From Octopus sinensis (Eukaryota), in contig NC_043001.1 in NCBI RefSeq assembly GCF_006345805.1, positions 50,220,001 to 50,284,000 of the forward strand: a stretch of 64,000 bases of DNA. Direction: 5' to 3'. Shown piece after piece: positions 35,436 to 64,000 of this stretch. The position numbers and the translations under genes are program-made. Below the pieces are notes generated by a model, which saw nothing but the letters and a program-made list of their open reading frames with translations, was not told where the DNA came from and made no database searches. How positions within the stretch are numbered: position 1 is the stretch's first letter; each line of letters starts with the position of its first letter.

Positions 35436-35446
35436 AAATACTATTA

Positions 35447-35538
<92 letters not shown>

Positions 35539-40125: not shown

Positions 40126-40605
40126 TTATAAATAGAATGTCTTACAGCTGTTTCTGGGATATTTTATATATCCCTTAATCGGAGACGATGCGAGAAAATG
40201 GTTAAGCAATAGTTAATTTAGATAAGATATGAAATAGAGAGTGAAGTGGAGGAATGAAAATAGTTGTAAGATATACATGGATATTGCATCTGTAGATCCA
40301 TTGTTTAGACAGAATGGTATACATATAAGATTCCAATACCTTGTAAGTTCCAACAGTATTAAGTACTGTTGGAACTTACTCACAAGGTATTGAAATCTTA
40401 TATGTATACCATTCTGCCTAAATAATGGATCTACAGATGCAATATCCATGCATATCTCACGTCTATTTTCATTGCTTCACTTCACTCACTATTTCATATC
40501 TTATCCAAATTAACTATTGTGTAACCATTTTCTCACACCGTCTCCGATGAAGGGTTATATGAAATATACCGGAAACAGCTGTAAGACTTTCTAAATTTAT
40601 ATAAA
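40126..40605. repeat. About 480-bp imperfect palindrome (loop 40359-40363) with a hammerhead-like motif in each arm; duplicate at about 50179-50658
   Basis: Arms are reverse complements along about 235 bp. + strand motif at 40540-40587: gtct-CCGATGA-stem II-GAAACAGCTGTA^agac. Confidence 0.85.
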
Positions 40606-40712
40606 TTTATATAAATCCGGAAGTGCTGTTCTATCTTATGTTATGTTTCGATGTCGCTTGATCGAGGATGCAACGGGTAGGTTTAGCATTTTCAAATTTA
40701 TAATCTTGAAAT

Positions 40713-40769
40713 ATCATGCTGATGAGGGAAATGAATTTTAAAATTCTAATCCCGAAACGCGTACATGAT
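40713..40769 (+). ncRNA. Minimal type I hammerhead ribozyme (Penelope-type)
   Basis: atcatg-CTGATGA-ggga...tccc-GAAAC-gc-GTA^catgat: canonical core, stems I and II pair, palindromic stem III ACGCGU. Confidence 0.8.
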
Positions 40770-41297
40770 TAATCGTAAGACTGGTTGATTTCGATTTTTT
40801 TCCTTGTTGCCTATGTGAGTTACAAGTATTGCGGTCTCTGGAGACATATTGTAGTTAAAAAAATTAGCGGTTTTTAACTGCTATTTCTAAATTTTCGGTA
40901 TGTGGTAAAGCAACTTTTTGCTAAACACTTAATTATATTTATAATTATAAAAAGGCTTTTTGTATAAGTTTTTACCGATTATGGTTTTTTTTCCATACCG
41001 TAGCTACATAGTGAAATTTGTTAATTATTAAATTAATATATATATACATAGAGAGAGCGAGAGGAATACAAAAAACGGGAAAAGAATGCAAAACATCCAC
41101 TCAGATGATACAAAAGAGGGAGAAGAAAAAACACAGACAGGTCATTCAATGTTTTCTTTCCTCAATCGAATTTCGAATGACCCGTCCGTGTTTTTTTCTT
41201 GTCCCTCTTTTGTTTAATCTGTCTGGATGTTTTGTTGTCCTTTTTTGTATTCCTTTTTATATATACATATGGCAGCGTACGTACAGTTTAGTCTCTC

Positions 41298-41379
<82 letters not shown>

Positions 41380-41529
41380 ATATATATAATATATATACAT
41401 ATATGCATTTATACATGTACGTATACTATATATATATAGATGTAGACATATATATATATATATATATATGCATGCATATATATACATACATATTCATATA
41501 TACATATATATACACGTACATATATATCG

Positions 41530-41563
<34 letters not shown>

Positions 41564-41667
41564 GTACATATATATGTATACATATATATATATGCATATA
41601 CATACATATATATATATATATAATATATATACATATACATATATATATTCATATATATATATATACA

Positions 41668-41710
<43 letters not shown>

Positions 41711-41962
41711 ATATATATAAAGGTAAATTTTACAATTTACCTTTTCAAATCAGCTTGCTAAGTATATAGTCAAGAATATTAAATTTATTAACCGTAATAA
41801 ATTCCCTCTACCTAGAAAGGAACCTCTAAGGAAATTACACTCTATTATAAAAGTACTAAGGAAGAAAGGCGCACTGGTTTATGCAAAAAAAAAAACAGGT
41901 ATCCTTGGTAATATAAGCATTCCTTAGTATCAAAGACTTCTTAAGAAAGAAATAACTAAGAA

Positions 41963-42545
41963 CTCGGTAATGCAGTGAAAGCATATTATAAAAATAAAAC
42001 TACTGAATAATAATAATAATATGCAGTACTTGGCAGTGATTCTCATGACTTCTGATCTTATCTGATTGGAAGTGTTATCAAGAACATTGTTTTGTCTTGG
42101 TATAAAAATGGGCTACAGCAAATATTCTCCTCAATACCACAGATTTCCTTGTCTGTTCTTTGACCCCAACCAGTTGAACATGTCCATTAATGGCTGGCGA
42201 TATTTGCATCTCTGATCATGAGTAGAAGTAGTGGGGGAGCATCATAGCCATGTGTTGAGAGGAATTCTTTGGGGTTTGAATAATTCACTTCTGGAAACAT
42301 GGGTGTTTCGTTCCTTATTCAGGGACCTTTTAAGCGGATGGGCTACTCGACCTGAAGAAAATTCTGAGTCCCACCTGCAACGTCATGCACTGCTTATCTT
42401 GATATGAGATTATCATGTCACGCACATATGGGTATGATGCATGTGCCTACTGTACCCTTATCAGACGGATAGTCATGATGAGTATACTGGGCTTCGTATA
42501 TTTTACTCTAGTGTCACTTTGATGGCATGCACTGCTCTCTCACTC
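41963..42545 (+). mobile_element. Last about 45 nt of the R4/Dong LINE, then (AAT)n, then element X, then (AAT)n
   Basis: ctcggtaatgcagtgaaagcatattataaaaataaaactactgaa matches the LINE 3' end at 14324-14370; element X spans 42021-42545. Confidence 0.7.
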
Positions 42546-42918
42546 AATAATAATAATAACAATAATAAGAGTAATAGCAGTGAGAAGAAGAAGAAGAGAA
42601 GAAGAAGAAGAAGAAGAAGAAGAAGAAGAAGAAGAAGAAGAAGAAGAAGATAACAGATAGCGAATATAATATGAAAAGGTAAAAACATACTTTGAACAGG
42701 TAAAAAAAGCAAATTAAATAAAATTTGGTTTTTTTTTGCGGAGAGCGAAAGTGGTAACAAAAATAGGACAGTGAGAACAAGACAGTAAAAGCAAACGTGA
42801 CGGTTGTTAAACCAAGACGATGCTTTGCAGGAAGGACTGTTCTAACGAAGTCGCGTATTGTCCTTACTTTCGGAACGCGGAGTAGACAAAACAGGGAAAA
42901 ACTTATTTTGCATGTCTC

Positions 42919-43018
42919 NNNNNNNNNNNNNNNNNNNNNNNNNNNNNNNNNNNNNNNNNNNNNNNNNNNNNNNNNNNNNNNNNNNNNNNNNNNNNNNNNN
43001 NNNNNNNNNNNNNNNNNN
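42919..43018. other. Assembly gap (100 N)
   Basis: Direct reading. Confidence 1.
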
Positions 43019-44244
43019 CTATATGCATACATTCATATAAATATCTCCCTCCTTTTATACTCAACGGCGAAAAGAATACTGCGTGAACCAATTGATTTGG
43101 CAAGCAAGGTCTTATTTCCGTAAGTGGGATCAGCATGCCATAATACCAGCAAAAGAAAGGTCTCAAACACAGAGTGCATTCTCTCGCTATGACTTCATAC
43201 GTCTGCTATTATTCGGTATACGTGGCTTTTAACAGTTAGAACTTCCATCTGCAAGTTGTTTGCAACTAATAATCGCAGACAACATTGTCGTTATCTACCT
43301 TATGTATGTATATATTCATATATGTATATATGTGCATATATAAATATATATGTATGTAGCTATGCATATATGTTTGTTTCATTTGAAGTGAATAAATCAC
43401 TCAAGCTCAAGTCGTTATAGTGTAGACCAACTGTTTTCTCCCACATTTAGTTTAATCCCGAAAGCAGAAAAAGTTTGCTTTCATGTTCGAGAATTAATAC
43501 TGATGTTTCTAAGAAATTAGTTAAAGCTGTACTTTACAGTATTTACTGAATATATATATACACACATATATATCTCATAGTAACTCGCCCAGAAAAAATG
43601 TAAGAAAATTATTATTATTTCTTGTTATTGTTGATGCTGTTGTGGTCGTTGGTACTGATGCTATTGTTTAGCCGCAGGTCAACCTTAAATAAGCAGTTCT
43701 ATTATACGAAGCAATCCATCTCCGACCACTACCCTGTTTATAGATATGTAATGCCCACTCGAAAGTTTCTATCCAATGTATCCTTTTCTAAAAATTTAAG
43801 GGATGATATGAGGGATATTTAGTTGTCATTTTTAGCATAAACAATGATCTGAGATTGCTTTCGTTCTCCTACCATTCTTGGAATCCCTATAAAATGGTGT
43901 TGCATTTTTCCATTCTGTCTGAGCAGCGGAGAAAAACTGGATACATTGACCCCATAGAAATAGTGGTGAAGTTATTTTACCATGCGCACTGTATAAGGAA
44001 ATACGTAAGAGTTTACAACAATATAATTCGTCTCTGTACAGTCTCCTAAATACTCATAATTAAAAAATGGCATTTAAATTTTATCGAACAAAGGCGTGGT
44101 AAAACAACTTGCTTCCCAACCACATGGTTTGAGATGCAGTCTTACTGAATCAAACCTTGGGCAAGTGTTTTCTACTATAGCCTCGAGCTGACCAAACCGT
44201 TGTGAGTGGATTTGGTAGACAGAAACTGAAAGAAGCCCATCGTA

Positions 44245-44279
<35 letters not shown>

Positions 44280-45506
44280 GCTTTCGGTGCGAATGGCTTT
44301 TTACACGGTGCCGCTTTTACAATCTTGTAAATAATAATAATGGTATATTTATATAAGCTTAAAGCGATCACCGTGCATTGGCTGAGGAAAATAGTCTAAT
44401 AAAGAGGCATATAAACCATCAACAGAAAAATAGAAGGCTTTCCTATCCGTATGGGAGTTGAACCCACATCCCTTTGTTAACGCGACTAAGTGTATTACCT
44501 TTTCACCAGCGAATCAAACTTTCTTTTCCTGTGAAATTTAAGAACTATAATAGTTCGTGTTTGTTTCATTATTATTTACAGTATTGTAAAAACGGCGCCG
44601 CATAAAAAAAAAAACCGAAAGCATATAGAAAGTTTATTTACATATCCACGCGGATAGGAAATCCTTCTGTTTTTTTTATGCCCCTTTATTATACTATTTT
44701 CGGATCTTTTCGGTTTGAACGGCAGTTTTTTCTAGCGGTGTCATATGAAATTGTCACTCAAAATTATGACCCTAGTATCGATCTATTGCATTTCAATCTG
44801 TTTTAGGGTTAGGGTTAGTTAGGGTTAGGTTTAGGGTTAGGGGTGGGGAGAAGGGTATCTTTTTTTTCTTCACGAAAATAAATAAACCCAATCTGTTTCT
44901 TAAACGAGGGACATATTCATACGGCACAGAATGTTTTTTTTACCTCAATAGACGTATTTGATTGGTTGAAATTGCAGAAATTGAAGAAAGAAACAACAAA
45001 TATCTTACAAACTATAGAATTTTCTCAATAATGCCAAGAGAAAAAGATGTTTTATAAACACATTCTACCAGTATACGAAGTTTAAAATTTTTAGTTACCT
45101 AGAAATTATGTTAAAAACTGCCGTTCAAACCGAAAAGATCCCTATTTACCCTAGTTATTGCACGGTGGTCGCAATAAGCTTTAAGCTTATATAAAAATAC
45201 CATTATTATTATTAACAGTATTGTAAAAACGGCACAGTATAAAAACCATTCGCACTGAAAACACATAGGAAGTTTGTTTACATACAAAAGATACAAACAA
45301 ACACGAACTATTATAGTTCTTAAATTTCCCAGGAAAAGGGAGGCTAATTGGCTAGTATAAAGGTAACACAGTCACGTTAACAAAGGAATGTGGGTTCGAC
45401 TCCTATGCAGATAGAAAAGCCTTCTTTTCTCTGACGAGGGTTTATTTGCCCCTTTATTAGACTATTTTCCTTAGTCAATGCACGGTGATCGCCAAAAATA
45501 CTATTA

Positions 45507-45598
<92 letters not shown>

Positions 45599-45902
45599 AT
45601 ACTTACGTGGGTTGGATGTGTGTGTGGGGAGATGTTTGTGGCTCGGCAAATTGATCGATAAAATAAGTACCAGGCTTAAAAATTAAGTATTGGGGTCGAT
45701 TCATTCAACTAAAAGCTCAAAGTGGGCACCAGCAGGGCTGCAGTATAATGGCTGAAAATAGTTAAAGAAGTTTTTATCGACTCCGAACGGATAAGACGAC
45801 CTCAGCGAAATTTGAAGTATATAAAGACAGACAAAACACCACAAAGCATTTTATCCGGCATGTAAACAATTCTGCCAGCTTCTAAGAACCATCAAATACC
45901 AT

Positions 45903-48045
45903 ATTGTAAAAGCACTTCTTTTATCAATCACCATTATTATCTCACTGACATCAATCATTAACATACAAGCGGAAAACCTCGAAAATAATTGTGAAATTAA
46001 AATTTCTCCTAATGTCAGTCAAAATTTAACTCGGTTAGTAAAATCAGGCAAACTGGTTTTCAATTTTGAAGTCCATATAGCTGATAAAAAGCTCGATGAT
46101 CTTCTCAATCCTGTACCACTGGATTATTTTGCAAATGCGAGGCATTTCATGTGGATTCCAGATAAACCAGATGGTTTAGTAATGTATAAAAATGTCCTCT
46201 TTGATTTTTCAGTTCATTAATTTAATATATTAGACTTTTACATTGCTTCTCTAAATATTGTTGTCGATATAAATTGTGGAAAACAAAATATTCGGAGATA
46301 CGATTCGGTAAGTTTGATTTTCGAAGAATTAAAGAGAATCGTAGTTATCGATAACTTGCAGATGGGAGAATCTGGATATATGTGTTTTTTTATAAATTTG
46401 TCGCGTCGCTTGAGGAATAACAGCCTTTCTACGTTATCAACATAGAGAAGATTGGGTATAAATCGAGAGATACTGAAGAACCATTGCTGTGAACTACATG
46501 AAAATGATAAGCACACTTACGAATCGAAATCCATTTGTTCTGGAAATATCATTGAAAATAGTATGTTTGACAATTGTGCAAATATTGTTGGAGCAGTTCT
46601 GTGGGTTATATTTCCATTATTCATCAGTTTTGTATCAGAAGCTAAATTACCACTATCAGCTAACCACTCTTTGCCAACTAAAAACACATCGCCAAATTCC
46701 AGTGAACCTAACCAGCAACAATCAGCTGACGAGGAAGTCGTCTTGTCAATTGAACAGGCATCGCCAGATTCCCCTGAATCTAACAAGCAACAATTACATC
46801 ACGATGAATTTACAATTGAACACACATTGCCAGACAAATCGGAATGGATTTGTGTAAAACATGATATTTGCAGTTTTTCTCATTTTTTCATCGTGGTTAT
46901 TTTGCTTTCATTATTCGACTACTGTTGTTTCAAGACTAAGAAGAGGCTTTCTTATTCTGCTTTCTCTCTCAGAAATTCTCCTGGATCTATTACTGTATTA
47001 CTTATTTTTATATGAAACGTTGACAATATTTTCACACGATCGTATTCCGTTGGGTTATCGCTCCTCCATTCTAGGAATCCCGAAAGGTAATGAACTTTCA
47101 GGTAGTTTTGTTTTGAATCCTATTGTTGGGATAATCAGTTACATAATTGTTAACTTTATTCTCTTAGTTCTTCTCAGTCGTGTAAGTGACGCTATTGCTT
47201 ATAATGCATTATATCAAGAATCCACTTGCACATTTCTCATTAAAGATAAAAAAATTTTAATGGAGTATGGTAATTTGAATGTTACTGCACTTCAGGATTA
47301 TGATCGACTCCTTGCAATAATGAAAGCTAATATTTCTGTTGCTGCAAACCCAGATTTCTGGTACTTACTATTTAGTACTTGGATTAAACGTATAAAAAAA
47401 ATGGGATAAAAATGTTCCAAAATTTATATTTTTTTCCTTTTATTGTGATTTTATTTGCTGTATTTTCTATCTGCGAATTTCTTCTGTGTCTCGTTTATTA
47501 CGGAATCCCCTTCGTATATTTGATTCTAACTTTACCATTAAGTTATTTCAAAATGTATATTTTACCTCTCTATGAGAAACGTAGTCATATTTTCAAGTGT
47601 GTTATTGTAATTTTATCGTTGATGTCATTGCTAATTCATATAGCATGGGCATTTTATTCAAGCTACGTATTTCTTGTTGAATTTATACAGTTAACCAAAC
47701 CTGTTCACCCAGATTTAGTTCTGTCAATATGTGGAGAGGAATTCATTAAAGCCAAGTTGTTTAAAGTAATCGTTAACAAACACTGTCCTTTGAGACACGA
47801 GATTGGTAAATCCATTGTAAAACTATTTCTAATCGTATCTTTTTATCTTTGCTTGCAATAACATAATAAGTCGAAAGGATTTGGGTCTATCAACATTCAC
47901 ACGGATTGCCTTGATGTTGGTGACTTCTGCGATACCTAAATTTTTGTCGAAAATTACTACTAAATTTCCTTTTAAGAAACCTCTGTTAGACAATGTTATT
48001 GAAACAAAACATTTGGAAAATGAAATGAATCCGAGAGCAAGTTAT
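45903..48045 (+). pseudogene. Pseudogene copy B (duplicate of A, possibly an assembly artefact)
   Basis: Identical translated fragments and the same lesions as copy A. Confidence 0.85.
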
Positions 48046-50765
48046 GAAATCAATAATATTTTTCGAAAACTGAAACTATTCCAATATTCCAGAAATTATT
48101 CCATCGCTTTTAACTACTGTGCATAGTAATCTGATAGATTACGCCTGATTTTTAGCTCCCTCGATACTCTTAGCATCATTACTGTTCGCATCTTCCCTGT
48201 TTTATAAATTTCGACTGTTGATGTCAGTGGTAACTGCAACGTGCCTCTTTTACGATAAAGAGCTGAGCTGTTCTATAGAATACATTGCACTTTTGTTCAA
48301 TGATTTGAACTCGTGATAGTACCACCTCGTATATTAAAAGTGGCCACGAAGGTCGCACATATAAGCCGAAATGAAAACGCCATATTTTACATCCCTAGTA
48401 GTTTGATTCATCAATTGCTGTTAGTCTACATCCGGATTTTTCATTATCTGTATCCCGCAACTCTTCTCTGGCAATGTTCCAGCCTATATACACTCCAAGC
48501 TCTTTACGTGTTCTTCTTTAACTGTTGGGATACTTTCTCTTGCTATTTTAAATTTTAATTTAATTTTTTCACTGCCTTAATAAATGTTAGAATACGTGTC
48601 TTTTTTGCTCTAAATCGCATCCTTTATTGCTTCATCAGCTCATCTAGCCTCGTAAGGGCACTCTGCATGATTTGCTTGTCTATAGATAGAAGTGCCAGGT
48701 TATTCATTAAGGCCTTCTTATGTGATTGTATATGGGCCATTTGTTCCAAGATGTATGTCACTTTCAATTTATAATTTACAATTTTTTATATTTTACTTGT
48801 AAATTTATGATTTTAAACTTCATACATTTATGCTTTACTCCAATCCCATTATATGCATATTACTAGCTAACTATCAATTTTCCCTCTCTACGGCTTTATC
48901 TACTATTCCATTTATAAAGAATTCGCAACTTACTGTATAACTTACATAACATTTTTATTTCTGCTAATTCTAAACTCTTATACTTAACCTTCAAACTTAA
49001 TACATTATATATTTTATCTTATCCCTTTTTACCTTGATCGTGTTTTATTACAGTCTGCTTTATAGGGCTGTCATATCTATATTACTAGCTAAGTATTTAC
49101 TTTCAATCTAAGCATCTTATCTACTACATTTTATACGACTCGCTATTGTAATTATGCCACTGCTCTTGGACATACTAAAATTTTAAATTTCAAATTGATT
49201 TTCCTATATCTCCTCTATTTTCTCTATTTTATATATCATCAATTTATCTAAACTATATTCGTTCAAAACTAACATAGATTATAACTTTTTTGACCACTTT
49301 TCAATTAAAGTAATTCTGGCAATAGTTCTTACCATTGTCATCAGTTTCATTCGTCTCATACTTTTAATCTTAAACTGAAATAATTTCTCACACATCAAAT
49401 GAATTTTTGTACCGGTCATAATGTTGTATTGACTGACCATTCTGAGAATCTTTAGTCCAGATACACTGGTTTGCTATATATTGTCTTTTCCTCATTTATT
49501 AATGTCCGTAGTTCTTGTTATTTTTCCTTTTTCTCCTTCTCTCATGATCTCTATACTAATTATTCACCGTCTAACAATACTTCTATCCACTTTTCGTTTC
49601 CTCCCGATATAAGCAAAAAAAACAATGCCATGTCTGGACGACGCAAAACGTAAGAGCCACACCTTTGATGCAAGTCTGACGAAGTGCAACTCGAATGTCT
49701 AAAGCCGCAAACGTTACACAAATTTTAACTTCGAATTATTTACGTAAATAATTGTTAACAGAAAAGTTAGTCAAAAACAATTGTAACGTATCATTAAAGG
49801 TGAATTAAATGATTTATTCGTTTTCTTGTATTATAATTTACTCTTCAGCACACCCACACAACGTTTTTAAGGTCATGAAACCGGGATTTTCTACACCTGA
49901 AGAATTTCGGTATGAGTCTGGAATCCGACAGTGTTAATAGTCCAGAATGTTAGAATACGTGTCTTTTTTGCTCTAAATCGCACCCTGTATTGCTTTATCA
50001 GCTCGTCTAGCCTCGTGAGGGCACTCTGCAAGATTTGCTTGTCTATAGATAGAAGTGTCAGGTCGTCCATTAAGGCCTCCTTAGGAGATACAATACCTTT
50101 ATACCCTACCAGGACCTAAGATATATACAATTTTCAGAATGAGATAAAAATCCAAGGCTATGAAAGAGTTTAGAACATTTATAAATAGAATGTCTTACAG
50201 CTGTTTCTGGGATATTTTATATATCCCTTAATCGGAGACGATGCGAGAAAATGGTTAAGCAATAGTTAATTTAGATAAGATATGAAATAGAGAGTGAAGT
50301 GGAGGAATGAAAATAGTTGTAAGATATACATGGATATTGCATCTGTAGATCCATTGTTTAGACAGAATGGTATACATATAAGATTCCAATACCTTGTAAG
50401 TTCCAACAGTATTAAGTACTGTTGGAACTTACTCACAAGGTATTGAAATCTTATATGTATACCATTCTGCCTAAATAATGGATCTACAGATGCAATATCC
50501 ATGCATATCTCACGTCTATTTTCATTGCTTCACTTCACTCACTATTTCATATCTTATCCAAATTAACTATTGTGTAACCATTTTCTCACACCGTCTCCGA
50601 TGAAGGGTTATATGAAATATCCCGGAAACAGCTGTAAGACTTTCTAAATTTATATAAATTTATATAAATCCGGAAGTGCTGTTCTATCTTATGTTATGTT
50701 TCGATGTCGCTTGATCGAGGATGCAACGGGTAGGTTTAGCATTTTCAAATTTATAATCTTGAAAT

Positions 50766-50822
50766 ATCATGCTGATGAGGGAAATGAATTTTAAAATTCT
50801 AATCCCGAAACGCGTACATGAT
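50766..50822 (+). ncRNA. Duplicate of the hammerhead ribozyme at 40713
   Basis: Identical sequence. Confidence 0.75.
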
Positions 50823-51350
50823 TAATCGTAAGACTGGTTGATTTCGATTTTTTTCCTTGTTGCCTATGTGAGTTACAAGTATTGCGGTCTCTGGAGACAT
50901 ATTGTAGTTAAAAAAATTAGCGGTTTTTAACTGCTATTTCTAAATTTTCGGTATGTGGTAAAGCAACTTTTTGCTAAACACTTAATTATATTTATAATTA
51001 TAAAAAGGCTTTTTGTATAAGTTTTTACCGATTATGGTTTTTTTTCCATACCGTAGCTACATAGTGAAATTTGTTAATTATTAAATTAATATATATATAC
51101 ATAGAGAGAGCGAGAGGAATACAAAAAACGGGAAAAGAATGCAAAACATCCACTCAGATGATACAAAAGAGGGAGAAGAAAAAACACAGACAGGTCATTC
51201 AATGTTTTCTTTCCTCAATCGAATTTCGAATGACCCGTCCGTGTTTTTTTCTTGTCCCTCTTTTGTTTAATCTGTCTGGATGTTTTGTTGTCCTTTTTTG
51301 TATTCCTTTTTATATATACATATGGCAGCGTACGTACAGTTTAGTCTCTC

Positions 51351-51432
<82 letters not shown>

Positions 51433-51582
51433 ATATATATAATATATATACATATATGCATTTATACATGTACGTATACTATATATATATAGATGTAGAC
51501 ATATATATATATATATATATATGCATGCATATATATACATACATATTCATATATACATATATATACACGTACATATATATCG

Positions 51583-51616
<34 letters not shown>

Positions 51617-51722
51617 GTACATATATATGTATACATATATATATATGCATATACATACATATATATATATATATAATATATATACATATACATATATATA
51701 TATTCATATATATATATATACA

Positions 51723-51765
<43 letters not shown>

Positions 51766-52825
51766 ATATATATAAAGGTAAATTTTACAATTTACCTTTT
51801 CAAATCAGCTTGCTAAGTATATAGTCAAGAATATTAAATTTATTAACCGTAATAAATTCCCTCTACCTAGAAAGGAACCTCTAAGGAAATTACACTCTAT
51901 TATAAAAGTACTAAGGAAGAAAGGCGCACTGGTTTATGCAAAAAAAAAAACAGGTATCCTTGGTAATATAAGCATTCCTTAGTATCAAAGACTTCTTAAG
52001 AAAGAAATAACTAAGAACTCGGTAATGCAGTGAAAGCATATTATAAAAATAAAACTACTGAATAATAATAATAATAATATGCAGTACTAGGCAGTGATTC
52101 TCATGGCTTCTGATTTTATCTGATTGGAAGTGTTATCAAGAACATTGTTTTGTCTTGGTATAAAAATGGGCTACAGCAAATATTCTCCTCAATACCACAG
52201 ATTTCCTTGTCAGTTCTTTGACCCCAACCAGTTGAACATGTCCATTAATGGCTGGCGATATTTGCATCTCTGATCATGAGCAGAAGTAGTGGGGGAGCAT
52301 CATAGCCATGTGTTGAGAGGAATTCTTTGGGGTTTGAATAATTCACTTCTGGAAACATGGGTGTTTCGTTCCTTATTCAGGGACCTTTTAAGCGGATGGG
52401 CTACTCGACCTGAAGAAAATTCTGAGTCCCACCTGCAAGGTCATGCACTGCTTATCTTGATATGAGATTATCATGTCACGCACATATGGGTATGATGCAT
52501 GTGCCTACTGTACCCTTATTAGACGGATAGTCATGATGAGTATACTGGGCTTCATATATTTTACTCTAGTGTCACTTTGATGGCATGCACTGCTCTCTCA
52601 CTCAATAATAATAATAACAATAATAAGAGTAATAGCAGTGAGTAGAAGAAGAAGAAGAAGAAGAAGAAGAAGAAGAAGAAGAAGAAGAGAGAAGAAGAAG
52701 AAGAAGAAGAAGAAGAAGAAGAAGAGAAGAAGAAGAAGAAGAAGAAGAAGAAGAAGAAGAAGAAGATAACAGATAGCGAATATAATATGAAAAGGTAAAA
52801 ACATACTTTGAACAGGTAAAAAAAA

Positions 52826-53894
52826 GCAAATTAAATAAAATTTGGGTTTTTTGCGGAGAGCGAAAGTGGTAACAAAAACAGGACAGTGAGAACAAGACAG
52901 TAAAAGCAAACGTGACGGTTGTTAAACCAAGACGATGCTTTGCAGGAAGGACTGTTTTAACGGAGTCGCGTATTGTCCTTACTTTCGAAACGCGGAGTAG
53001 ATAAAACAGGGAAAAACTTATTTTGCATGTCTCGTTTCTCTGTTTGTTTGTTTTTTGTTGTTCGAAAAAAAGTTCGTTTTCTGTTTTTGTTTTTATGTTT
53101 TCGTTTCTCATTGTGTCTACGATTTTTAAATGTCCTGTATCCATATATGCATGTATATATACATATATCTGTAGGTATGTACATATATGTATGCATATAT
53201 GCATATATTTATATATTATTTATATTATTATATGAACGAACGCCACACATCCTTTTCCAAATATGTTTTATCCTAATAATTACGACGCGCACTCTTATTC
53301 TATCTCTTCTCTGTCTATCTATCTCCCTCTCTTGTTCTTCTTTTCTGTTTTTCTCTCCCACCCTTTCCCTACTCTTCTCCTCTCCCCTTCACCGTTCCCT
53401 CTCTCTCTATCTCACTCTTCCTCCTTGACTCTCACGTCGCTGACACATGACGAAATGCCATCTATCTTTCTTCCACATCCTTCTTAAAGACAAGTCGTGC
53501 TTTTATATGTCTCTTCTCAAACTTCGTTTTTCTAGTGTTCATAATCTTCACATCGTCTTGGCTTAATAGCCCTCTCCATTTGTTTTTACTGTCTTGTTCT
53601 CACTGTCCTGTTTTTGTTACCACTTTCACCTTCCGCAAAATATCTCAAATTTCATTTAATTTGCTTTGCGGGAAGGACTGTTTTAACGAAGTTGCATATT
53701 GTCCTTACCTTCGAACGCGGAGTAGATGAAACGGGGGACAACTGATGAAGAGAATGTTCTTTATGCTGCATGTCTCGTTTCTCTGTTTGTTTTTTTTTTC
53801 GTTGTTCGAAAAAAGTTCGTTTTCTGTGTTTTTGTTTTTAATGTTTTCGTTTCTCATTGTGTCTACGTTTTTTATGTCTTGTACCCATATATGT

Positions 53895-53954
<60 letters not shown>

Positions 53955-54049
53955 GTATGTACATATATCTATATGTATATATGCATATATTTATATATTA
54001 TTTATATTATTCTATGATCGAACGCCACGCATCCTTTTCCAACTAAGCT

Positions 54050-54050
<1 letters not shown>
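52826..54050. mobile_element. Penelope-like terminal repeat cluster with direct and inverted partial copies
   Basis: 52826-52905 is inverted at 53585-53665; 52937-53270 is repeated at 53665-54045; the same family lies reversed at 58500-58900. Confidence 0.55.
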
Positions 54051-54145
<95 letters not shown>

Positions 54146-55747
54146 GAGGATAATATCGATATTTAAGTATCCATATTATCAAGTGGCCAGCATGGGAAAA
54201 ATACCGTACAAAGGTAATAATTTTTAACAATTAAAAATGAGGGTGTCTAAGAGACACCAACATGCCGAAATAGCAGTCGAAACTCTGACTACAAAAACCA
54301 CGTTAAGTGTTCGTATCGCACCATGAGATATATATATATAAAGTAAAAATTAAAAGAGTCAAAAGGAAGAGTAAGTAAAAATTAAAAGAGTCAAAAGGAA
54401 GAGTAAGTATGGTTAGGCAACTTTTTAATCGTTACAAATGTTTCGATACATACAATTTTATAATTATGAGCATAATTCTGTTTGAATTCGGAAGTACTGG
54501 TCGTTAGATGTATGTTGTCTGATGTCGCCTGGTCAGATAAGGCATGTTTAATTTTTGCAGTGCTGCTCTCAAATTTAAAATCTTGAATTACTGTACTGAA
54601 GAGGAGAATGATAGAGTGGAAATATGATTTTACATTTTTCACATCTGTCTAGCTCCGAAACGCGTATATAGTTAATCATAGCCGGGTGGATTAGTTATTA
54701 TACCGTTTGATAAGGGCAAAAAAATCTGTGCTCTTTGTAACTCGGAACTCTTTCATATTTTGTTCGCCCGAGGGTACCTTGTTAACTCGATTGTGCAAAA
54801 TTCTTTCAGATGCCCCCACTGGAAAAGGCATACATTTCTCTCATACCAATGAAGTCTAATATAGTTAACCCCTTGATTTCCTAAGAAAATTGGAAAAAAA
54901 TTTGAATTAAATTTGTAAGGGGATATCACTCCCCTGTTATTATAAGAACTGCTAGTTGTCTAGAACTGCTGACATCCCTGACAGCAGCACTGTATCCTGC
55001 CATGACCATTGTGACACCCCCTCTCTCTATCAAGTCGTTACAGTCGAACACACAGACACAGTCTTTTCTGTTGCTTGACCATTAATACCTGCTATATATA
55101 TCTCTCTCTCTTGCTGCCTTCGAAACACACTGCCACACATACATAGACGCACACACACATACATGAAAGCAATTTCTCACACTCAAACGCTCTAGCACTC
55201 ATTCTTAAAATAATTCAAATATTAACACCAGTCATACAGAATACATTCACACTCTTTGATTTTCCTGTACTCCCCTTCTGCTAACCGGATTTTGACCTTG
55301 TATTATCTCAACGGACCTTCTCGTCTGCTTTCACCCAACCTGGCGTCAACGCATAAAGATGGACAGTTTGTGCCATTTATTCCATGGGCTCCTCGTGAGC
55401 GTTTTGTCGAAAAGTTTGCTGTGCATTTTGTTGGAGAATTAAGTTCCTGGATTTTCCTGAAGAGAAGGCTGCAAAATGGACTCCTTATTCAATCCGAATT
55501 AGGGACTTTGCAACCTTTGAAACATATGTAGAAAATAATAAAAAGGAATTTTGTTAAATCTTCGTTCAGCTCCATTTCTTCCTACACTAAATATATAAAA
55601 CTTCAAATTTCCGCACTAAGGCACGGATTTTAGGCCCCATGGTCGTAACCCCAACCGTGCCTTTTCTGTTGTGATTTTTGCTACCCAGGTATTGGTTATC
55701 ATTTGAATTATCCGTAATTAGATAATTCATTTATCTACTTCAATAAC

Positions 55748-55781
<34 letters not shown>

Positions 55782-56404
55782 ATATATGTTTTGCAAACAA
55801 CTTTGTGCAAGTGCTACCAATCTAAATTTCCGCATACCGGAAACCAATCTAAAAGAACTGTGATGCGCATGGTATTGCTGTTTAAAATTTATAGTTAAAC
55901 AATAAAAAAATTGAAAAGTTAAAAAATTAAGACATTGGAAAGTCGAATTGGGCTGCTGGAGATTGTCTAAAGGGTGTTCGATATATGTACAGTGTAGTGA
56001 TTTAGGTTGCATTTAGATCTGAGGTAAAATTTGAATGTATGAAAAAAAGCGGTGGTTGTATGTACCTAAGGCCTCGTTATATTTATTTAGTAGTATTGAA
56101 AAGTTATGCTTTAATATGTTGAATGCTTCTTTTAGATATAACTTGCAGGCTGAGCGTGACCTTGGTATGAAAGCCCTGAATCTATTATGGACCATCATAA
56201 GTTATATGTAATATTCCTATTTTTGTGATGATGTATGCGACTGGCGTGGGTTGTGGGTTTACTGTGTTTCTCATCTCTAAAAGAATTGAGATGCGCAGCG
56301 TATCGCTGTTTAAAATTTATATTATCGGACCGGAGGTCTATTATCCTTCTATAGCACTTTCATAGCCTTACCTGCCATCTTAGGTCTTCTGGATACCAAA
56401 ACCT

Positions 56405-56437
<33 letters not shown>

Positions 56438-56506
56438 TCATACATGCACATACCTATGTATATAAATCTATGCATGTGCATACAAATGCGCGTGTGTGTG
56501 TGTAAA

Positions 56507-56538
<32 letters not shown>

Positions 56539-56902
56539 CTTGTGAAATCGAGAGATATAATTTACGATGAAAATTTGATTTCATTTTCATTGTGGGGAAT
56601 TCAGAGCTCACCTCTGACTGTCGCCGCCTCAGACTGTCACTCGTCTTTCCCTAGCGTCTTCCGAGTAGAGCCTTTAAATATTGTCTGTCTGCTTTAGCAT
56701 CTCTGACTACCACTCACTGCCACTTCGTGTGTTGTTTTACTACTTTTTTTACCTACAGCGTACAGCGTGAAAGACAGGGTCACACTAAACGTGTTATTAT
56801 ATAAGAAGATAACTAGTCCGGGAATATTTTGATATCACCTCGTATATTTAGAATGCATTCTAAGACGTTATTGTGTGTGTATTATCGTTCTATAACTGTG
56901 AG

Positions 56903-57412
56903 TAAACGCTCTAAGTTAGATCATATTTAGGCAATGCATATAATTAAGGCTGAAGTATCTTCCTGGTTGCTAAGAAAAATTTAATTAGCCTTTGCTATTT
57001 AATAGAAATAATACTGTTTTTTAAATAATGGCGGTGAAACTTACTAGACATTTTCAATGTTTCAGGTGCCTAATATTTTGGACATGAGAAGGTATAATGT
57101 AAACAGGATACTTGATATCAGTTAAGTCCTATTTAATAAAGGTATAGTAGTGACAAAGGGAAAATGTATGGATATGTTTAAAATTTCACACTCATATATA
57201 TATGAGTGTGAAATTTTAAACATATCCATACATGGATATTAGGCACCTAAAACATTGAAAATGTCTATTAAGTTTCACCGCCATTGTTTAAAAAACAGTA
57301 TTATTTCAATTAAATAGTAAAGGCTAATTAAATTTTTGTTAGCAACCAGGAAGATACTTTAGCCTTAATTATATGCATTGCCTAAATACGACTTAACTTA
57401 GAGCGTTTACAC
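56903..57412. repeat. Fold-back inverted duplication centred on the (TA)n at about 57200
   Basis: 57201-57412 is the reverse complement of 56903-57200 with about 100 bp missing. Absent from the paralogous module at 32500-32800. Confidence 0.9.
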
Positions 57413-57899
57413 ACACATATATATGAGTGTGTGTGTGTGCCCGTATATGCATACATACAAAAACACTCACGACATGCAGACATATACACGTCTACCTATG
57501 TAAATACATTCTTACACATATCTCCCCCCCTTTATACTAAGTGGCTAGAAGAATACCACATGAAACAGTTGCTCTAGTAAGCGGGGCCTTATCTCTGTAA
57601 GTGGGGTCAATGTGCAATAACACCAGCGAAAGAAAGTTCTCAGAACGATGTGCCTTCTCTCTTGATGACCTCATACATCAGGTAGTATCTGGCATCTGTG
57701 ATATCTAACTGTTAGCACTTCTTTCTGCAAGTTGTTTGCAACTAATATACTCAGAGAGCATTGTCGTTATCTAGGTTATGTATGTATATATTCATATAAG
57801 TATATATGTGTGTATATAAATATGAATGTATGTATCTATGTATTTATGTCTGTATTTAAAGCCATTAAATCAAACTAAAGTTATTATTGTGCAGACCAA

Positions 57900-57990
57900 C
57901 TATCTTATCGCACATTTATTTTAACCAGGAAAGCGAACAAAATTACATTTTCGTGTTTGAGAAGTGACTCGCTCACAAAAGGTAAGAAAA
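57900..57990 (+). promoter_or_regulatory. Candidate 5' UTR exon end and splice donor (AAG|GTAAGA, intron starting at 57982)
   Basis: Consensus donor conserved at 33541 in copy A. An alternative donor AAG|GTAAGT near 58060 is not conserved. Confidence 0.35.
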
Positions 57991-60265
57991 CAATTCTTAC
58001 TATTGTTATTGCTGTTGTTGTGGTCACCGTCGTTGGTATTGTTGCTATTGTTTAGCTGAAAGGTAAGTTTGAACAAGTAGTTCTATTGTACAAAATGTTC
58101 CATCTCCGACCACTATCCTGTCTACAAAGGCGTAATGCCTACTCGAAATTATTATAGCCAATGTATCCTTTTCAAAAAAAATTTAAGCGCTGATATAAGT
58201 AATATTTAGTAGTCATTTTTTGACACAAAGAGAGAAACCACCAGGATAATTTGGACATTCACTGATGAGGAAATCAGCTACGAATTTTCGATGTTCCATG
58301 TTTTTGTCGAATTTTCCGTTGGTTATGTTTTCGTCTAATTTTACTCTTGTCACGGATTCCTTAGTTTTCTGTTTGCTGTGTTTCCGTTAATTTTTTTCTT
58401 TGTTGTGTTCTTTCTATTCAATCCTTGATACTCCCTGTTTGTTTACTGATATATATGTGTGTGCATATATATAATAACAATTTAATAAATAAAACATATG
58501 CATACATACATATATGTACGTACCTACATCTATATGTATATATACATGCATATATGAGTACAGGACACCACAAATAAACGTAGAACACAACGAGAAACGA
58601 TAACATAAAACCAAACAAGTAAAAGGACTTTTTTTAACAACGAAAAAACAGAGTACAAGACAAACAACACAAGCAAAATTCCCCTTCTTCAGCTGCCCCT
58701 GTTTCGACTCAATGCTTGTTTCGAAGGTAAGGGCAGAACACGACAACACCGAAGCAGTCCTTCCCGCAAAATGAATTAAATAAGATTCATTTGCGGAGGG
58801 GTAAAATAAAAAAAAAGTGACAAGAACAGGACGTAAAAGCAATACAAATGAAGAAAAAAACAGTATAAATAACGATAAAAACAGTAAAAGACAGGACAAG
58901 GAAACAAAAAATATATATATATATATATGACAACTGGTGTTTGTGTGACAGCATTACCATAAATTAACGGTTGGGCAAAGTGATCGACAGAATGAGTACT
59001 GGGCTTAAAAATAAGTATAAGGGTTGATTCATTCGACTAAAAGCTAAAGGTGGGGTCCTAGCAGAGCCGCAGTATAACGACTGAAACGACTAAAAGATAG
59101 AAGTTTTTGTTGACCCCGAAAAAATAAGCCGATCTCGGTGGAATTTGAAAATAGTATATAAAGACAGACAAAAACACTACAAAGCATTTTATCCGGCATG
59201 CAAACAATTCTGCCAACTTTCTGCCACCAGCCTATTAAAATAATGAAATTATTTCCAATATTAATCCCCCTTGCAGAAAGATTGCCCTCCGGGTGGTTTT
59301 CTGCTAGCCACTTGACAATATTTTCACATTGATATTTTCAGTCGCAAATTTTTTTGGACACAAAATTCCAAAGTGATATTTGTGTAATAATGAAACCAAA
59401 CTAGGAGTGTTGCTTAGTAAATATTTCTTCCAGTAATTTATCGTTGTTGTAATATACCTCTCATTTAAAGAATCTTCAAGGTAACCCAACTACGTTTAGC
59501 GTGCTGGAAGTAGCAGCGATCACATGCTTATTATTGGAAGGCTTATAGCGTTCCAAACAGCCACCAACAAAATCTCTTCTTTATTTATTAAAAAATTTAT
59601 GCCGGTATATTAAGAAATTTTCATTTTATCAAAATTATTCATTTAACAAATTCCGGAAACTGATATTAACATAAGCTTTAAAGTTATACAGCTATTTTGT
59701 CTAATAGCATTCATTCATTCATTAAATAATTTTTTAAAAATTACGTATATAGAATAAACTGTAGGATTTGCAAATAGCGAATTAAAAATTGAAATGAAAA
59801 TATTGAAATGAATATATATTAAATTATCATCAATGAAAATAGAGGCGAGAGAGAGTGAGAGACTGTTGCAAATGAAAATGGAAAATTTCACCTGCAACGA
59901 ATATTGTTTATTAAACATTAAAGTCTACTCTGAATATTCAAATCTGTAAAAACACTTGTAGTTCAAATATTACATAATCTTCAGAAATCAAAATTACAGG
60001 AAATTTCTTGGAACATGAATTTATAAAAAATTCCAGATGGTCAAGCCTTTAATAATTGCTTTCTTTTAGTAACTGTTACACATATAATTAATGAATAACT
60101 TTCTTCATTATGATATATATACATCCATAATTTTAGTTCAAATATCACTTGATTCAACTGATATAATATTTTACTATTTTGATAAAACTGGACTAATCTT
60201 CAACTAGGAACCATCCAATACCGTGTAAAATGTATCTTTTTTCTGTCCGTTTTTTCTTTCTTTCT

Positions 60266-60345
<80 letters not shown>

Positions 60346-60564
60346 TTTTTTGCACTCAAAGAAATCACAATAAAAATTTCAAGAGGAAGTGTCAAGAGAT
60401 TGATATGAAAATATACACAGTATGACTATGAACGAAAGCATGATTAAAGAATAAACAAAACTAAACAAGCTACAAGACAGTTACCTTTAGTTTTGAATAA
60501 ATATTTTCCATTCTAAATAGTTACGGAATAAGGAAAATGAAATTAAACCTCCATTAATTTATAT

Positions 60565-60600
60565 GTTCAATTTTTCTTTATTACAGAAAACGAAACATGG
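60565..60600 (+). promoter_or_regulatory. Splice acceptor and strong start context
   Basis: ttcaatttttctttattacAG (60585-60586) is followed 10 nt later by aacATGG. Confidence 0.7.
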
Positions 60601-63407
60601 CTGTCATGCAGATGGTAACAGCACCTCTTTTATCAGTCATCCTTATTATTTCTCTCACATCACTAAACACATATGCAAAAGAACACAGAAATAATTGTAC
60701 AACTGAAATTTCTCCCACTGTCATTAAAAATTTAACTCGTCTAGTAAGATCAGGCAAACAAGTTTTCAATTTTGAAGTCCATATAATTGATAAAAAAATT
60801 GATGGCCTTCTCAATCCTGTGCCACTAGATTATTTTGCAAATGCGAGACGTTTCACATGGATTCCAGATAAACCAGATGGTTTAGTAATGTATAAAAATG
60901 TCCTCTTTGACTTTTCAATTCGCTCATTTAATATATTAGACGCTTACATTGCTACTCCAAGTATTGATATCGATATGAATTGTGGAAAACAAAATGTTCA
61001 GCGATACGATGTAATATATTCGATTTTCGAGGAATTAAAGAGAATCGTATTTATCAATGAATCGCAGATGGGAGAATCTGGATATATGTGTTTCTTTATA
61101 AATTTGTCGCACGACATGCAGAAGAACAGTCCTTATACGTTATTAGCGTACAGAATATTGGGTATTTATCGTGAGATACTGAAGAATTATTGTTGTGAAC
61201 TACATAAAAATGATAATACTACTTATGAACCAAAATCCATTTGTTCTGGAAATACCATTGAAAACAGTATGTTTGTCAATTGTGCAAATGTTGTTGGAGC
61301 AGTTCTGTTGGCCATATTTCCATTGTATATCAGGTTTATATCAAAAGCTAAATTACCTCCGTATTCCTGCAACCAGCCACAATCAGGTAACGCGGAGGTG
61401 CATTTGGATATTCTACCCTCATCACCAAATTCAAATGAACCTAACCAGCAACAATCAACTAACGAGGAAGTGCATTTGGAAACTCTACCCTCATCACCAA
61501 TTCCCTAGAACCTAACCATCACAATCAACTAACGAGGAAGTGCATTTGGAATTCTACCCTCATCACCAAATTCCTAGAACCTAACCATCAACAATCAACT
61601 AACGAGGAAGTGCATTTGGAATTCTACCCTCATCACCAAATTCCCTAGAACCTAACCATCAACAATCAACTAACGAGGAAGTGCATTTGGAATTCTACCC
61701 TCATCACCAAATTCCCTAGAACCTAACCATCAACAATCAACTAACGAGGAAGTGCATTTGGAAATTCTACCCTCATCACCAAATTCCCTAGAACCTAACC
61801 ATCAACAATCAGGTAACGAGGAAGTGCATTTGGAAACTCTACTCTCATCACCAAATTCAAATGAACCTAACCAGCAACCATCAACTAACGAGGAACTGAA
61901 TTCTCGAAATGAAGACACATCGCCGAATTCCCTAGAACCTAACCAGCAACAGTCAACTAACGAGAGATTAAATTCTCAAAATGAAGACACATCGCCAAAC
62001 TCCCTAGAACCTAACCAGCAACAATTACCTAACAATGAATATCTATGTAAATACGCATTGCCAGACAAATCAGAATGGATTAGTATACAACATAATATTT
62101 ACAGTTTCTCTCATTTTTTATATTGGTTGTTTTGTTTTCATTATTCGACTTTGTGTGTTTCGAGACTAAGAAGAGGTATTCTTATTTTGCTTTCTCTCTC
62201 AGTAATTCTTCTAGATCTTTTAATGTATTACTTATATTTATATGAAACGGTGACAATATTTTTACATGATCGCATTCCATTGGGTTATCGCTCGTTCATT
62301 CTAGGAATCCAGAAAAGCTATGAACTTTCAGATTGTTCTGTTTGGGGTCACTTTTTGGGGATAATCAGCTACATAATTGTTAACTTTATCCTGTTTGTTC
62401 TTCCCAGTCATGTAAGTGAGATTATCGCTGAAAGTATGATAGATACAAAACTCAAAGAAGATTCTTTTTCTACACTTCAGGGTTTTGATCGACTCCTTGC
62501 AATAATTAAAGTTAAAGTTTTTATTGCTGCCGACCCATATTTCTGGAAATCTATATTTGTTAAGTGGATTACGCGTATACATAAAATGTGGACTATTTTC
62601 TACAAGAGTAATATTTTTATAAAAATTATATTATGTTTGCTTCCTATTTTGGCTACAATTTTATTTGTTGTATTTTTTATCTGTGAATTACTTCTCCGCC
62701 TCGTTTATTACGGAATCCCATTCATATATTTGATTCTAACTTTACCATTAAGTTATTTCAAAAAATATATTTTACCTCTAATGAAGAAAAATATATATCC
62801 TTCCAAGTGTCCTGATAAAATTTTATCATTGCCGTCATTGCCGTTTTTTATATTATGGGCATTTGCTTCAAGCTATGTATTTCTTATGAGTTTTCAAATC
62901 ATTTGCACTTATGTATTTTCAATAGCTATTGCAATGCTTGCTAAACCTGATATTGTCGGTGGTATATGGTTTGTTGCCATGTTTTTCGTTCACGCTTTTA
63001 CAGTTATGAACGCTCTTCAGGAACATTATAAAGGGATACTAGTTCAATCAATAAAGTTTACCAAAATTATAAAACCAAATTTAGTTCAGTTAAAATATGA
63101 AGAGGAATACATTGATGCCAAATTGTTTGAAGCAATCGTTAACGAGTATTTTCCTTTAAGTTACGAGATTGGTAAAGCCATTATAAAATTAATTCTAATC
63201 GTATCTTTTTTCTTTGCTTGCAATAACATAATAAATCGAAAGGATTTGCATCTATCAGCATTCGCACGGATTGCTTTGATATTGATGACTTCATTGATGC
63301 CAAAAATATTGTCGAAAATGAATGCTAAATTTCATTTTGATACGTCTCTGTCACACAAAGTTATTCACACAATTTATGAACTTCCAAAAGGAAATGAATC
63401 CAATTGA
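60597..63407 (+). CDS. Uncharacterised multi-pass membrane protein, about 938 aa if six homopolymer deletions are corrected: signal peptide, Cys-containing glycosylated ectodomain, TM, 24-aa repeat loop, about 8-9 further TMs
   Basis: ORFs 60597..61508 and 61752..63407 are in the same frame; the disruption is confined to repeat units 2-5; the whole sequence is colinear with pseudogene A. Confidence 0.8.
61389..62030 (+). repeat. Coding tandem array of nine 72-bp units (NEEVHLEILPSSPNSLEPNHQQST)
   Basis: Unit starts at 61389, 61461, 61531, 61601, 61672, 61743, 61815, 61887, 61959; lengths 72,70,70,71,71,72,72,72,72. Confidence 0.95.
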
Positions 63408-63489
63408 ATTTACGAAACTATTAACATTTTTCCAAAAATATAATTATTCCAATATTCCAGAAATTATTCTATCGCTTTTAACTACTTTG

Positions 63490-64000
63490 TATAGTAATCT
63501 GGTGGATTTCACCTGATTTCTACATCCTTCGATTCTCTTAGCATCATCACCGTTCACACCTTCCTTACTACATTAATTTCGACTACTGACTCCAGTGGTA
63601 ATTGCATTGAGCCTCTTTTCGATAAAAAGCTGAGCTGTTCAATAACCGACGTACGCCGAACCACTTTCTAATGAATGCATTGCACTTTTTCTCAATGATT
63701 TGGACTCGTGATAGTGCCACCTCGTATATTAAAAGTGGCCACGAAAGTTGCGGATATAAGCCGAAATGTAAGCCCCTTAGCTTGCTTCCCTGGTAGCTTC
63801 GAACCAACTGTTAGTCCACTCCTGGCTTGTTTCATGATCTGCATCCCACGACTCCTATCTGACAATGTCCCAGCGTATATATGCCCCAAGCTCTTAAATG
63901 GTTCTTCTTAATCTCTTGGAATGCTTTCTCCAGCTATTCTAAATTTTACTTTTATCTTGCACTATTCTAATAAGTGTCAGACTACGCGACTCTTTTACTC
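63490..64000 (-). mobile_element. Hero-type RT fragment at the same position as in copies A and B
   Basis: ORF 63583..63807 ...FGLYPQLSWPLLIYEVALSRVQIIEKKCNAFIRKWFGV..LNSSAFYRK; GTLSDRSRGMQIMKQA. Confidence 0.8.

Follow-up and report, generated by a model that had tools for sequence, protein, structure and literature searches.

LOC118763557 is a RefSeq gene at 60597-63407 (forward strand) of a 64,000-nucleotide stretch of Octopus sinensis DNA (contig NC_043001.1, positions 50,220,001-50,284,000; hereafter the window), and its span matches CM016863.1 50,280,597-50,283,407 (GCA_006345805.1) base for base. The gene starts with an ATG at 60597, ends with a stop codon at 63405-63407 and is a member of a mollusc family of membrane proteins, although the copy in the window lacks an uninterrupted coding sequence. 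Its coding potential is far beyond chance, since frames of 303 and 551 codons stand open in DNA of 33% GC and have homologs at E-values of 1e-199 to 1e-52. The flanking DNA is AT-rich (33-39% GC), as is typical of octopus, and holds retroelement debris.

Reading frame, intact copy and gene models

The first-pass annotation of this DNA had taken 60597-63407 as one gene; the ATG, the stop codon and the sequence motifs on which it relied are present, but it had missed that the frame is broken. No single frame stays open across the span: in-frame stops occur five times, at 61506, 61530, 61575, 61653 and 61671, and the frame path across the repeat array runs 0>2>1>0>2>1>0, equal to six -1 frameshifts. 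Two open reading frames (ORFs) in the same frame remain, 60597-61508 (303 amino acids, aa; N piece) and 61752-63407 (551 aa; C piece), and the two pieces were searched separately. All stops and frameshifts are located inside a 72-bp (24-aa) coding tandem repeat of 9.3 copies at 61371-62033, which encodes the acidic Ser/Pro loop of the protein, and the other ~2.6 kb of the ORF is clean.

The best database match was LOC118761507, located on the unplaced scaffold VCDQ01000806.1 (L001) of the same assembly. L001:3286-13409 is collinear with window 53922-64000 at 98.8% identity, and the L001 copy is one uninterrupted 938-codon ORF that reads through the repeat array. Compared with L001, the window gene has six 1-nt deletions (61498, 61520, 61549, 61572, 61619 and 61690), every one in a homopolymer run and three of them identical (GGAAATT>GGAATT in successive repeats); they are packed into 193 bp, and the net shift of -6 restores the frame. 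In addition, 42 substitutions separate the two genes, every one 3' of 61811. Divergence is ~0.15% upstream of ~61.8 kb and 2.6% downstream, with a sharp switch inside the repeat array; the 1.2 kb 5' of this switch is identical in the two copies, and the 3' 1.6 kb carries 36 nonsynonymous and 6 synonymous changes (~6% of residues differ). Given this switch, L001 appears to be an alternate haplotype or a very recent duplicate of the window locus, and a recombination or gene-conversion breakpoint in the repeat array, as well as unusually divergent alleles or copies, is suggested. The ratio of nonsynonymous to synonymous substitution rates (dN/dS) between the copies was 1.6 overall and 1.2 in the transmembrane (TM) domain, not significantly above neutral (p = 0.19), and nothing in the 3' part points to recent purifying selection. 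Rather than marking a dead gene, the six deletions more likely stem from errors of long-read assembly or from changes restricted to a single allele; it is their crowding as homopolymer contractions into 193 bp of repeat in an otherwise clean 2.8-kb ORF, with the frame restored, that gives them the look of assembly error.

The RefSeq protein models depart from the full frame. That of the window locus (P0015) has 501 aa, the frameshifted repeats being removed as one 'intron' (~61389-61836) and ~290 aa of the membrane domain as a second (~62043-62921); that of the L001 copy (P0001) has 841 aa, 97 aa being removed despite the intact ORF (equivalent of ~62634-62921); and the O. vulgaris model (P0194), which has a similar junction, also takes in a gelsolin-like neighbour as a fusion. 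The junctions are canonical GT..AG, with a common acceptor just before ...IAMLAKPD (~62921) in two models and at a similar position in O. vulgaris. Judging from the sequence, they could be real exitron-like splicing or an annotation artefact.

Architecture of the encoded protein

The full-length product, read from the intact L001 ORF, has ~938 aa. Placed on the window, the features of the gene and its product are as follows.

60571-60586, + strand: probable 3' splice acceptor TTTTTCTTTATTACAG, 10 nt before the ATG, read from the sequence
60597-60677, + strand: signal peptide of 27 aa (MAVMQ...LNTYA/KE), hydrophobic core at residues 2-25, small residues at -3/-1 (T-Y-A/K)
60678-61283, + strand: extracellular or luminal domain of ~200 aa with six conserved Cys and five N-X-S/T sequons, alternating beta-alpha predicted
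61287-61340, + strand: TM0 anchor NVVGAVLLAIFPLYIRFI, from hydropathy, with R/K residues next to it on the cytosolic side
61371-62033, + strand: coding 72-bp repeat array, 9.3 copies, predicted to form a disordered, acidic cytosolic linker rich in Ser/Pro/Asn/Gln
62058-62177, + strand: conserved juxtamembrane segment comprising LPDKSEWI, the short amphipathic helix FLYWLFCFH and, where TM1 begins on its cytosolic side, SRLRRG
62178-63311, + strand: eight-helix membrane domain, from family-averaged hydropathy, the positive-inside rule, AlphaFold2 (AF2) helix boundaries and motif coordinates
62178-62243, 62352-62408, 62613-62711 and 62721-62759, + strand: TM1, TM2, TM3 and TM4
62829-62939, 62952-63017, 63168-63233 and 63252-63311, + strand: TM5, TM6, TM7 and TM8
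62706-62720 and 62940-62951, + strand: tight outer turns YYGIP and AKPD
62685-62687, + strand: codon of the invariant Glu (FICE), membrane-embedded in the outer half of TM3, seven residues before YYGIP
63405-63407, + strand: stop codon, with a candidate poly(A) signal ATTAAA at 63728

The acceptor at 60571-60586 suggests an intron in the 5' untranslated region and an entire coding sequence in a single exon. An in-frame stop lies upstream of the ATG at 60555, and the ATG context AAACATGG is favourable. A (TTTC)25 microsatellite is located at 60253-60350, ~250 bp upstream of the ATG.

The first-pass annotation had listed the 27-aa signal peptide, the TM segment now called TM0, five sequons, the acidic Ser/Pro stretch and a series of hydrophobic segments, all of which are present in the translation, as are LPDKSEWI, SRLRRG, DRIPLGYRS, YYGIP and AKLFEAIV. 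It had also listed six Cys in the ectodomain, including those of YMC, YCC and IC; seven lie between the signal peptide and TM0 (C34, C129, C165 in YMC, C199/C200 in YCC, C216 in IC, and C229), of which six are conserved. C34, C129, C165, C199, C200 and C216 are invariant in the octopus paralogs and invariant or nearly so over 32 sequences including bivalves, and the position of the signal peptide is also kept in the paralogs. The ectodomain sequons are at N33, N45, N154, N169 and N207, and one more (N548, NES) belongs to the tail, which is predicted to be cytosolic. Pro242 of the TM0 region is invariant in the family alignments, across the family the Trp of SEW and an Arg of SRxxR vary little or not at all, and the TM3 Glu is invariant in alignments of 14, 24, 28 and 32 sequences. 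In the numbering of the C-piece alignment, the family motifs of the membrane domain, this Glu included, correspond to W10, R42, P77, G99-G100-P101, F165-W166, E213, G222, P224 and P300, all of which the C piece carries.

From the K/R-rich loops on the cytosolic side, the ectodomain sequons, hydropathy and the AF2 helix boundaries, we infer a topology with the amino terminus outside and the carboxyl terminus inside (N-out/C-in), in which the linker and the K/R-rich loops would be cytosolic, the ectodomain disulfide-bonded and glycosylated, and the linker disordered. The loops predicted to be cytosolic contain on family average 10.4, 3.0, 10.2 and 6.6 K/R per sequence. On the intact 938-aa copy, AF2 (with alignments limited to 23-24 sequences) reached a mean predicted local distance difference test score (pLDDT) of 50 and a predicted template modelling score (pTM) of 0.31, and on the window TM domain alone 59 and 0.32, respectively. 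The ectodomain was predicted best, with the pLDDT of 10-residue blocks mostly at 56-85 over residues 31-180 and a dip to ~42 at 101-110; pLDDT was below 35 across the repeat linker, which is followed by eight long helices. No internal duplication of TM1-4 versus TM5-8 was found by hhalign.

The mollusc family and its octopus members

The C piece matched 19 proteins, every one from Octopus (O. bimaculoides, O. sinensis and O. vulgaris), the full-length ones being 51-61% identical to it. When a HMMER profile of 14 octopus sequences was run against 1.84 billion cluster representatives (50% identity clusters), 130 representatives were found at E <= 1e-3 and 111 at E <= 1e-10, mostly 750-860 aa long and matched in both the ectodomain and the membrane domain. 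The named representatives are from molluscs only (Ostrea, Saccostrea, Mytilus galloprovincialis, M. edulis, M. trossulus and M. californianus, Mercenaria, Sinanodonta, Argonauta and Octopus) and are called 'uncharacterized' or 'hypothetical', save two O. bimaculoides entries (P0003 and P0004) which UniRef names 'Receptor for retinol uptake STRA6'; homologs among unannotated invertebrate proteins had been anticipated by the first-pass annotation. The remaining representatives are contigs of metagenome or SRA assemblies, some of Mb size, and presumably host DNA. Bivalve members, at 17-20% identity to octopus, retain the six Cys and SRxxR, GGP, NPxFW, C-E, YYGxP and AxP. In the window gene, the N piece carries the signal peptide and the six-Cys pattern of the family (C...C...C...CC...C), and the C piece carries the eight-TM domain with the TM3 Glu, SRxxR, GGP, NPxFW, YYGxP and AxP. 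Two further homolog searches with alignments gave nothing beyond close relatives, a scan of JGI metagenome loci for more alignment members found none, and the exact full-length and C-piece proteins are not on record in the transcript and assembly collections. Logan contigs for one member (P0229; L006 and L007) carry both the gene and its head-to-head neighbour and so look genomic, not transcript-derived.

Among characterised families no counterpart was found. Pfam hmmscan (E <= 0.1 up to E <= 10) gave no significant family for the window pieces, five octopus paralogs, ten distant homologs and 28 alignment members, the best E-values (0.017-0.15) all belonging to unrelated families; no scanned member had a Pfam domain match to Cys-loop, GPCR, iGluR/IR, DEG/ENaC, TRP or TMC proteins, and NCBIfam held no match to the family. 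Two family profiles searched against PDB sequences returned chance matches only, at E >= 0.044 (the best to an 84-aa antiporter subunit). Foldseek searches of PDB and BFVD with the low-confidence models yielded nothing below E = 0.018 and no meaningful template modelling score (TM-score). Thus the absence of a recognised receptor or channel signature, as first annotated, was borne out by Pfam, NCBIfam, PDB sequence profiles and hhalign, and a confident full-length match to a characterised family was looked for with Pfam, PDB and hhalign and not found. A literature search on octopus and mollusc STRA6, the LOC identifiers and mollusc-specific TM families found no paper describing the family. As judged from these comparisons, the family is real, conserved and so far mollusc-restricted, without a detectable relative among characterised families, and undescribed.

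The Octopus paralogs all fall into a single clade (support 97), sister to Argonauta, in a FastTree tree of 118 members whose other half holds the named bivalves. This single clade indicates that the 8-10 octopus genes arose by expansion within the octopus lineage, after the Argonauta split. Seven O. sinensis loci of the family are located on one 213-Mb chromosome. The family genes are intronless and often arranged as tandem or head-to-head pairs; the Saccostrea (L004) and Argonauta (L008) homologs are single-exon genes, and the members in oyster and Argonauta are flanked by ordinary host genes (such as ankyrin, Arf and RRM). On a metagenome scaffold that encodes a bivalve-type member, two members that are 55% identical, L005:630-3053 (-) and L005:3749-6049 (+), stand head-to-head ~700 bp apart, which suggests a shared bidirectional promoter; by this pair, local duplication of the family is shown not to be confined to octopus. 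Within Octopus, identity to the window gene is 59-73% in the ectodomain versus 51-62% in the membrane domain, so the ectodomain is better conserved than the TM domain, the opposite of what is expected of a diversifying ligand-binding domain.

A pseudogene relative of LOC118763557 lies ~23 kb upstream of it and has a second copy in the assembled window.

35900-37984, + strand: paralog pseudogene, found by tblastn with octopus paralogs, family motifs in different frames
45960-48044, + strand: second copy of this pseudogene, with the same tblastn scores and corresponding coordinates

LPDKSEWI, SRLRRG, DRIPLGYRS, YYGIP and AKLFEAIV recur in the paralog at 35.9-38.0 kb. It is classed as a pseudogene because these motifs lie in different frames and it has four frameshifts, an internal deletion and no start (the first ~20 codons are missing); its identity to O. 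bimaculoides P0002 is ~78-85% in the 5' two-thirds and drops to ~60% beyond. The 10-kb blocks 32960-42918 and 43019-53033 are 99.6% identical, and the second starts directly after a 100-N gap (42919-43018). Since the identity is this high and the second block begins right at the scaffold gap, that block is probably a haplotype false duplication in the assembly which doubles the pseudogene. The family content of the window is therefore probably one gene, broken as assembled, and one pseudogene, and the 'clustered' paralogs of the first-pass annotation reduce to one frameshifted pseudogene and its probable assembly duplicate. Its proposal of birth-and-death evolution fared better, in view of the neighbouring pseudogene, the post-Argonauta Octopus clade and the near-neutral dN/dS of 1.2-1.6.

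Elsewhere in the window, non-LTR (long terminal repeat) retrotransposon remnants are located at 14724-21069 (-) and 25109-25789 (-), with RVT_1 at E = 5e-20 and 3.5e-10 and zf-RVT at 2.4e-06; one retrotransposon ORF is broken by a long poly-Glu (GAA-type) tract, and one element is present as two incomplete copies, which overlap at 15.4-16.0 kb and 18.0-19.4 kb. A 166-aa ORF at 7957-8457 (-) weakly resembles GIY-YIG nucleases (E = 0.004, short of the Pfam cut-off) and may be a Penelope-like endonuclease remnant. There are also a purine/pyrimidine-biased tract of ~0.6 kb at 13126-13803 and a TGTATG-type repeat at 8815-9393 that gives spurious long ORFs.

Interpretation and comparison with known systems

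We hold it somewhat probable that LOC118763557 is a single-coding-exon gene for a nine-pass membrane glycoprotein of ~938 aa with a type-I start, belonging to an undescribed mollusc-only family, with the frame broken only in the repeat. Several points weigh against this. As assembled, the window copy is unable to encode the full protein, and the shared GGAAATT>GGAATT change could be one real mutation spread by unequal exchange. The dN/dS of 1.6 fits relaxed constraint, a pseudogene of the family lies close by, and at three loci the gene models remove stretches of the TM domain as introns, so that the expressed product may differ from the full ORF. Moreover, the AF2 models are poor, and the Foldseek comparison based on them is uninformative, as it would neither show a new fold nor rule out a known one.

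The alternative that survives best, possible and yet doubtful in our view, is that the window copy is a decaying pseudogene, a dying duplicate with real frameshifts, and that only other paralogs or alleles function. The five in-frame stops, the three identical deletions in successive repeats (which fit a variant unit spread in the array), a dN/dS against the intact copy indistinguishable from neutral and the clear pseudogene paralog nearby all speak for decay, but six homopolymer contractions in so short a stretch, with the rest of the ORF clean, are the pattern of unpolished long-read error, and the 1.2 kb of complete identity 5' of the divergence switch and the restored frame also speak against decay. 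Decay of the window copy is in any case compatible with the description of the family.

Further, we tentatively propose a mechanism for the protein, which we regard as an unproven candidate rather than the expected outcome. The protein would reside in the plasma membrane or the secretory pathway, where its disulfide-bonded ectodomain would recognise and bind an extracellular or luminal partner, and the eight-helix bundle would, via the buried invariant Glu, move or sense a cation, a proton or another ion, or a small polar substrate. It would thus be a transporter- or channel-like receptor, not a kinase- or G-protein-coupled one. The ligand sensing, channel activity and sensory or immune role put forward in the first-pass annotation are a plausible guess of the same kind. 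A bolder version, which we think quite unlikely, is that the family founds a new mollusc-specific class of fast-evolving ligand-operated channels or transporters for recognition (chemosensation, self/non-self or gamete), with the linker, lengthened by repeats on the cytosolic side, serving as a tail whose signalling or scaffolding could be tuned. Fast evolution would fit the ~6% of residues that differ between the two copies in the 3' part, the dN/dS above 1 and the Octopus expansion with its pseudogene turnover.

Instead of a surface receptor or channel, the family could comprise membrane-embedded enzymes of the secretory pathway, such as acyl- or glycosyl-transferases or hydrolases with a luminal alpha/beta domain, which we consider unlikely. 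The N-terminal domain is predicted to be alternating beta-alpha, the buried invariant Glu and the conserved Pro/Gly/Tyr/Arg suit catalysis as well as transport, and HGSNAT and NRF-6/acyltransferase-3 proteins likewise join a signal peptide and a luminal domain to 8-11 TM helices; but there was no Pfam match to Acyl_transf_3, EMP70 or any transferase family, no catalytic constellation of His, Ser or Asp is evident among the invariant columns, and the Foldseek matches to a fucosyltransferase were weak (E >= 0.67, TM-score <= 0.19).

Very improbable is a STRA6-type retinol-uptake receptor, as the UniRef names of P0003 and P0004 would have it and as the superficially similar size and predicted nine-TM N-out/C-in topology might suggest. 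Pfam RBP_receptor (PF14752) matched no scanned member even at E <= 10, no STRA6 chain was among the PDB sequence matches of the family profiles, and hhalign gave probabilities of 0.15% (32 sequences) and 0.10% (117 sequences) with E of 0.4-0.6. The STRA6 side of this alignment consisted of zebrafish 5sy1_A residues 126-569 and human STRA6, the latter validated by its match to 5sy1_A at E = 7e-139. 5SY1 was also absent among the 50 Foldseek matches listed for each model, the models being poor. The STRA6 name on these two entries thus appears to be an automatic mis-annotation. Equally improbable is an origin by domestication, in which a membrane glycoprotein would have been taken over from a transposon or a virus, such as a herpes-like virus of molluscs: it would explain the taxonomically patchy distribution, and the genes are intronless, multicopy and, in the window, set among retroelements, but the octopus and bivalve profiles found no relative in IMG/VR viral contigs, BFVD gave no fold match of significance, neither terminal repeats nor viral genes next to the family were seen, and the flanking genes in oyster and Argonauta are those of the host.

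A family of at least 130 sequence clusters without a Pfam entry, a solved relative or literature is an annotation gap and a candidate for a new family definition, in a phylum that includes major aquaculture species and the cephalopod models of neurobiology. The STRA6 label on two octopus entries could mislead work on mollusc retinoid signalling, and the RefSeq models of 501 and 841 aa, set against a 938-codon ORF, illustrate how gene models suffer from errors in coding repeats. Should the family prove to transport, to form channels or to act as receptors, it would add a lineage-specific membrane signalling module; otherwise it is one orphan family among many, as taxonomically restricted orphan membrane families are common, and nothing so far points to an unusual mechanism.

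STRA6 (5SY1) is reported to have nine TM helices in N-out/C-in topology; its fold further includes an intramembrane helix, dimer formation and cytosolic helices that bind calmodulin. The octopus family is like it in being multi-pass, in its similar size and in the predicted nine TM segments in N-out/C-in orientation, and unlike it in that the signal peptide is cleaved, the ectodomain (200 aa) is rich in Cys and a linker lies in the cytosol; STRA6 is not known to have a module of signal peptide, Cys-rich ectodomain and TM0, and no STRA6-type intramembrane helix or calmodulin-binding region was recognised in the octopus family. Architectural look-alikes, not homologs by any test, are the TM9SF/EMP70 nonaspanins, NRF-6/acyltransferase-3, HGSNAT and SLC44/CTL, in which a signal peptide or anchor comes before a luminal or extracellular domain of ~200 aa, glycosylated and containing Cys, and 9-11 TM helices follow; some of them are expanded in invertebrates. 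Their Pfam models (EMP70, Acyl_transf_3 and Choline_transpo, among others) match none of the more than 40 scanned family members, and TM0 with a long cytosolic linker is atypical of all four look-alikes.

The true homologs are found in molluscs, at E-values from 1e-199 (octopus) to ~1e-10 (bivalves): O. bimaculoides A0A0L8GC23 / LOC106875165, Argonauta hians 'LOC115209402-like', Ostrea edulis LOC125647777, Saccostrea LOC133189949 / LOC134247628, Mytilus californianus LOC127730538 / LOC127704956, Mercenaria LOC128555111 / LOC123548840 and Sinanodonta woodiana ACJMK2_019411. The linker sets the window gene and O. bimaculoides P0002, in which it is repeat-expanded (9-10 units in O. sinensis versus a few degenerate ones in P0002), apart from the other members, in which it has 20-40 aa. 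The mollusc homologs are single-exon genes, collinear with the window gene over their full length, and share the signal peptide, the six-Cys ectodomain, TM0 and the eight-TM domain with the same invariant Glu and motifs.

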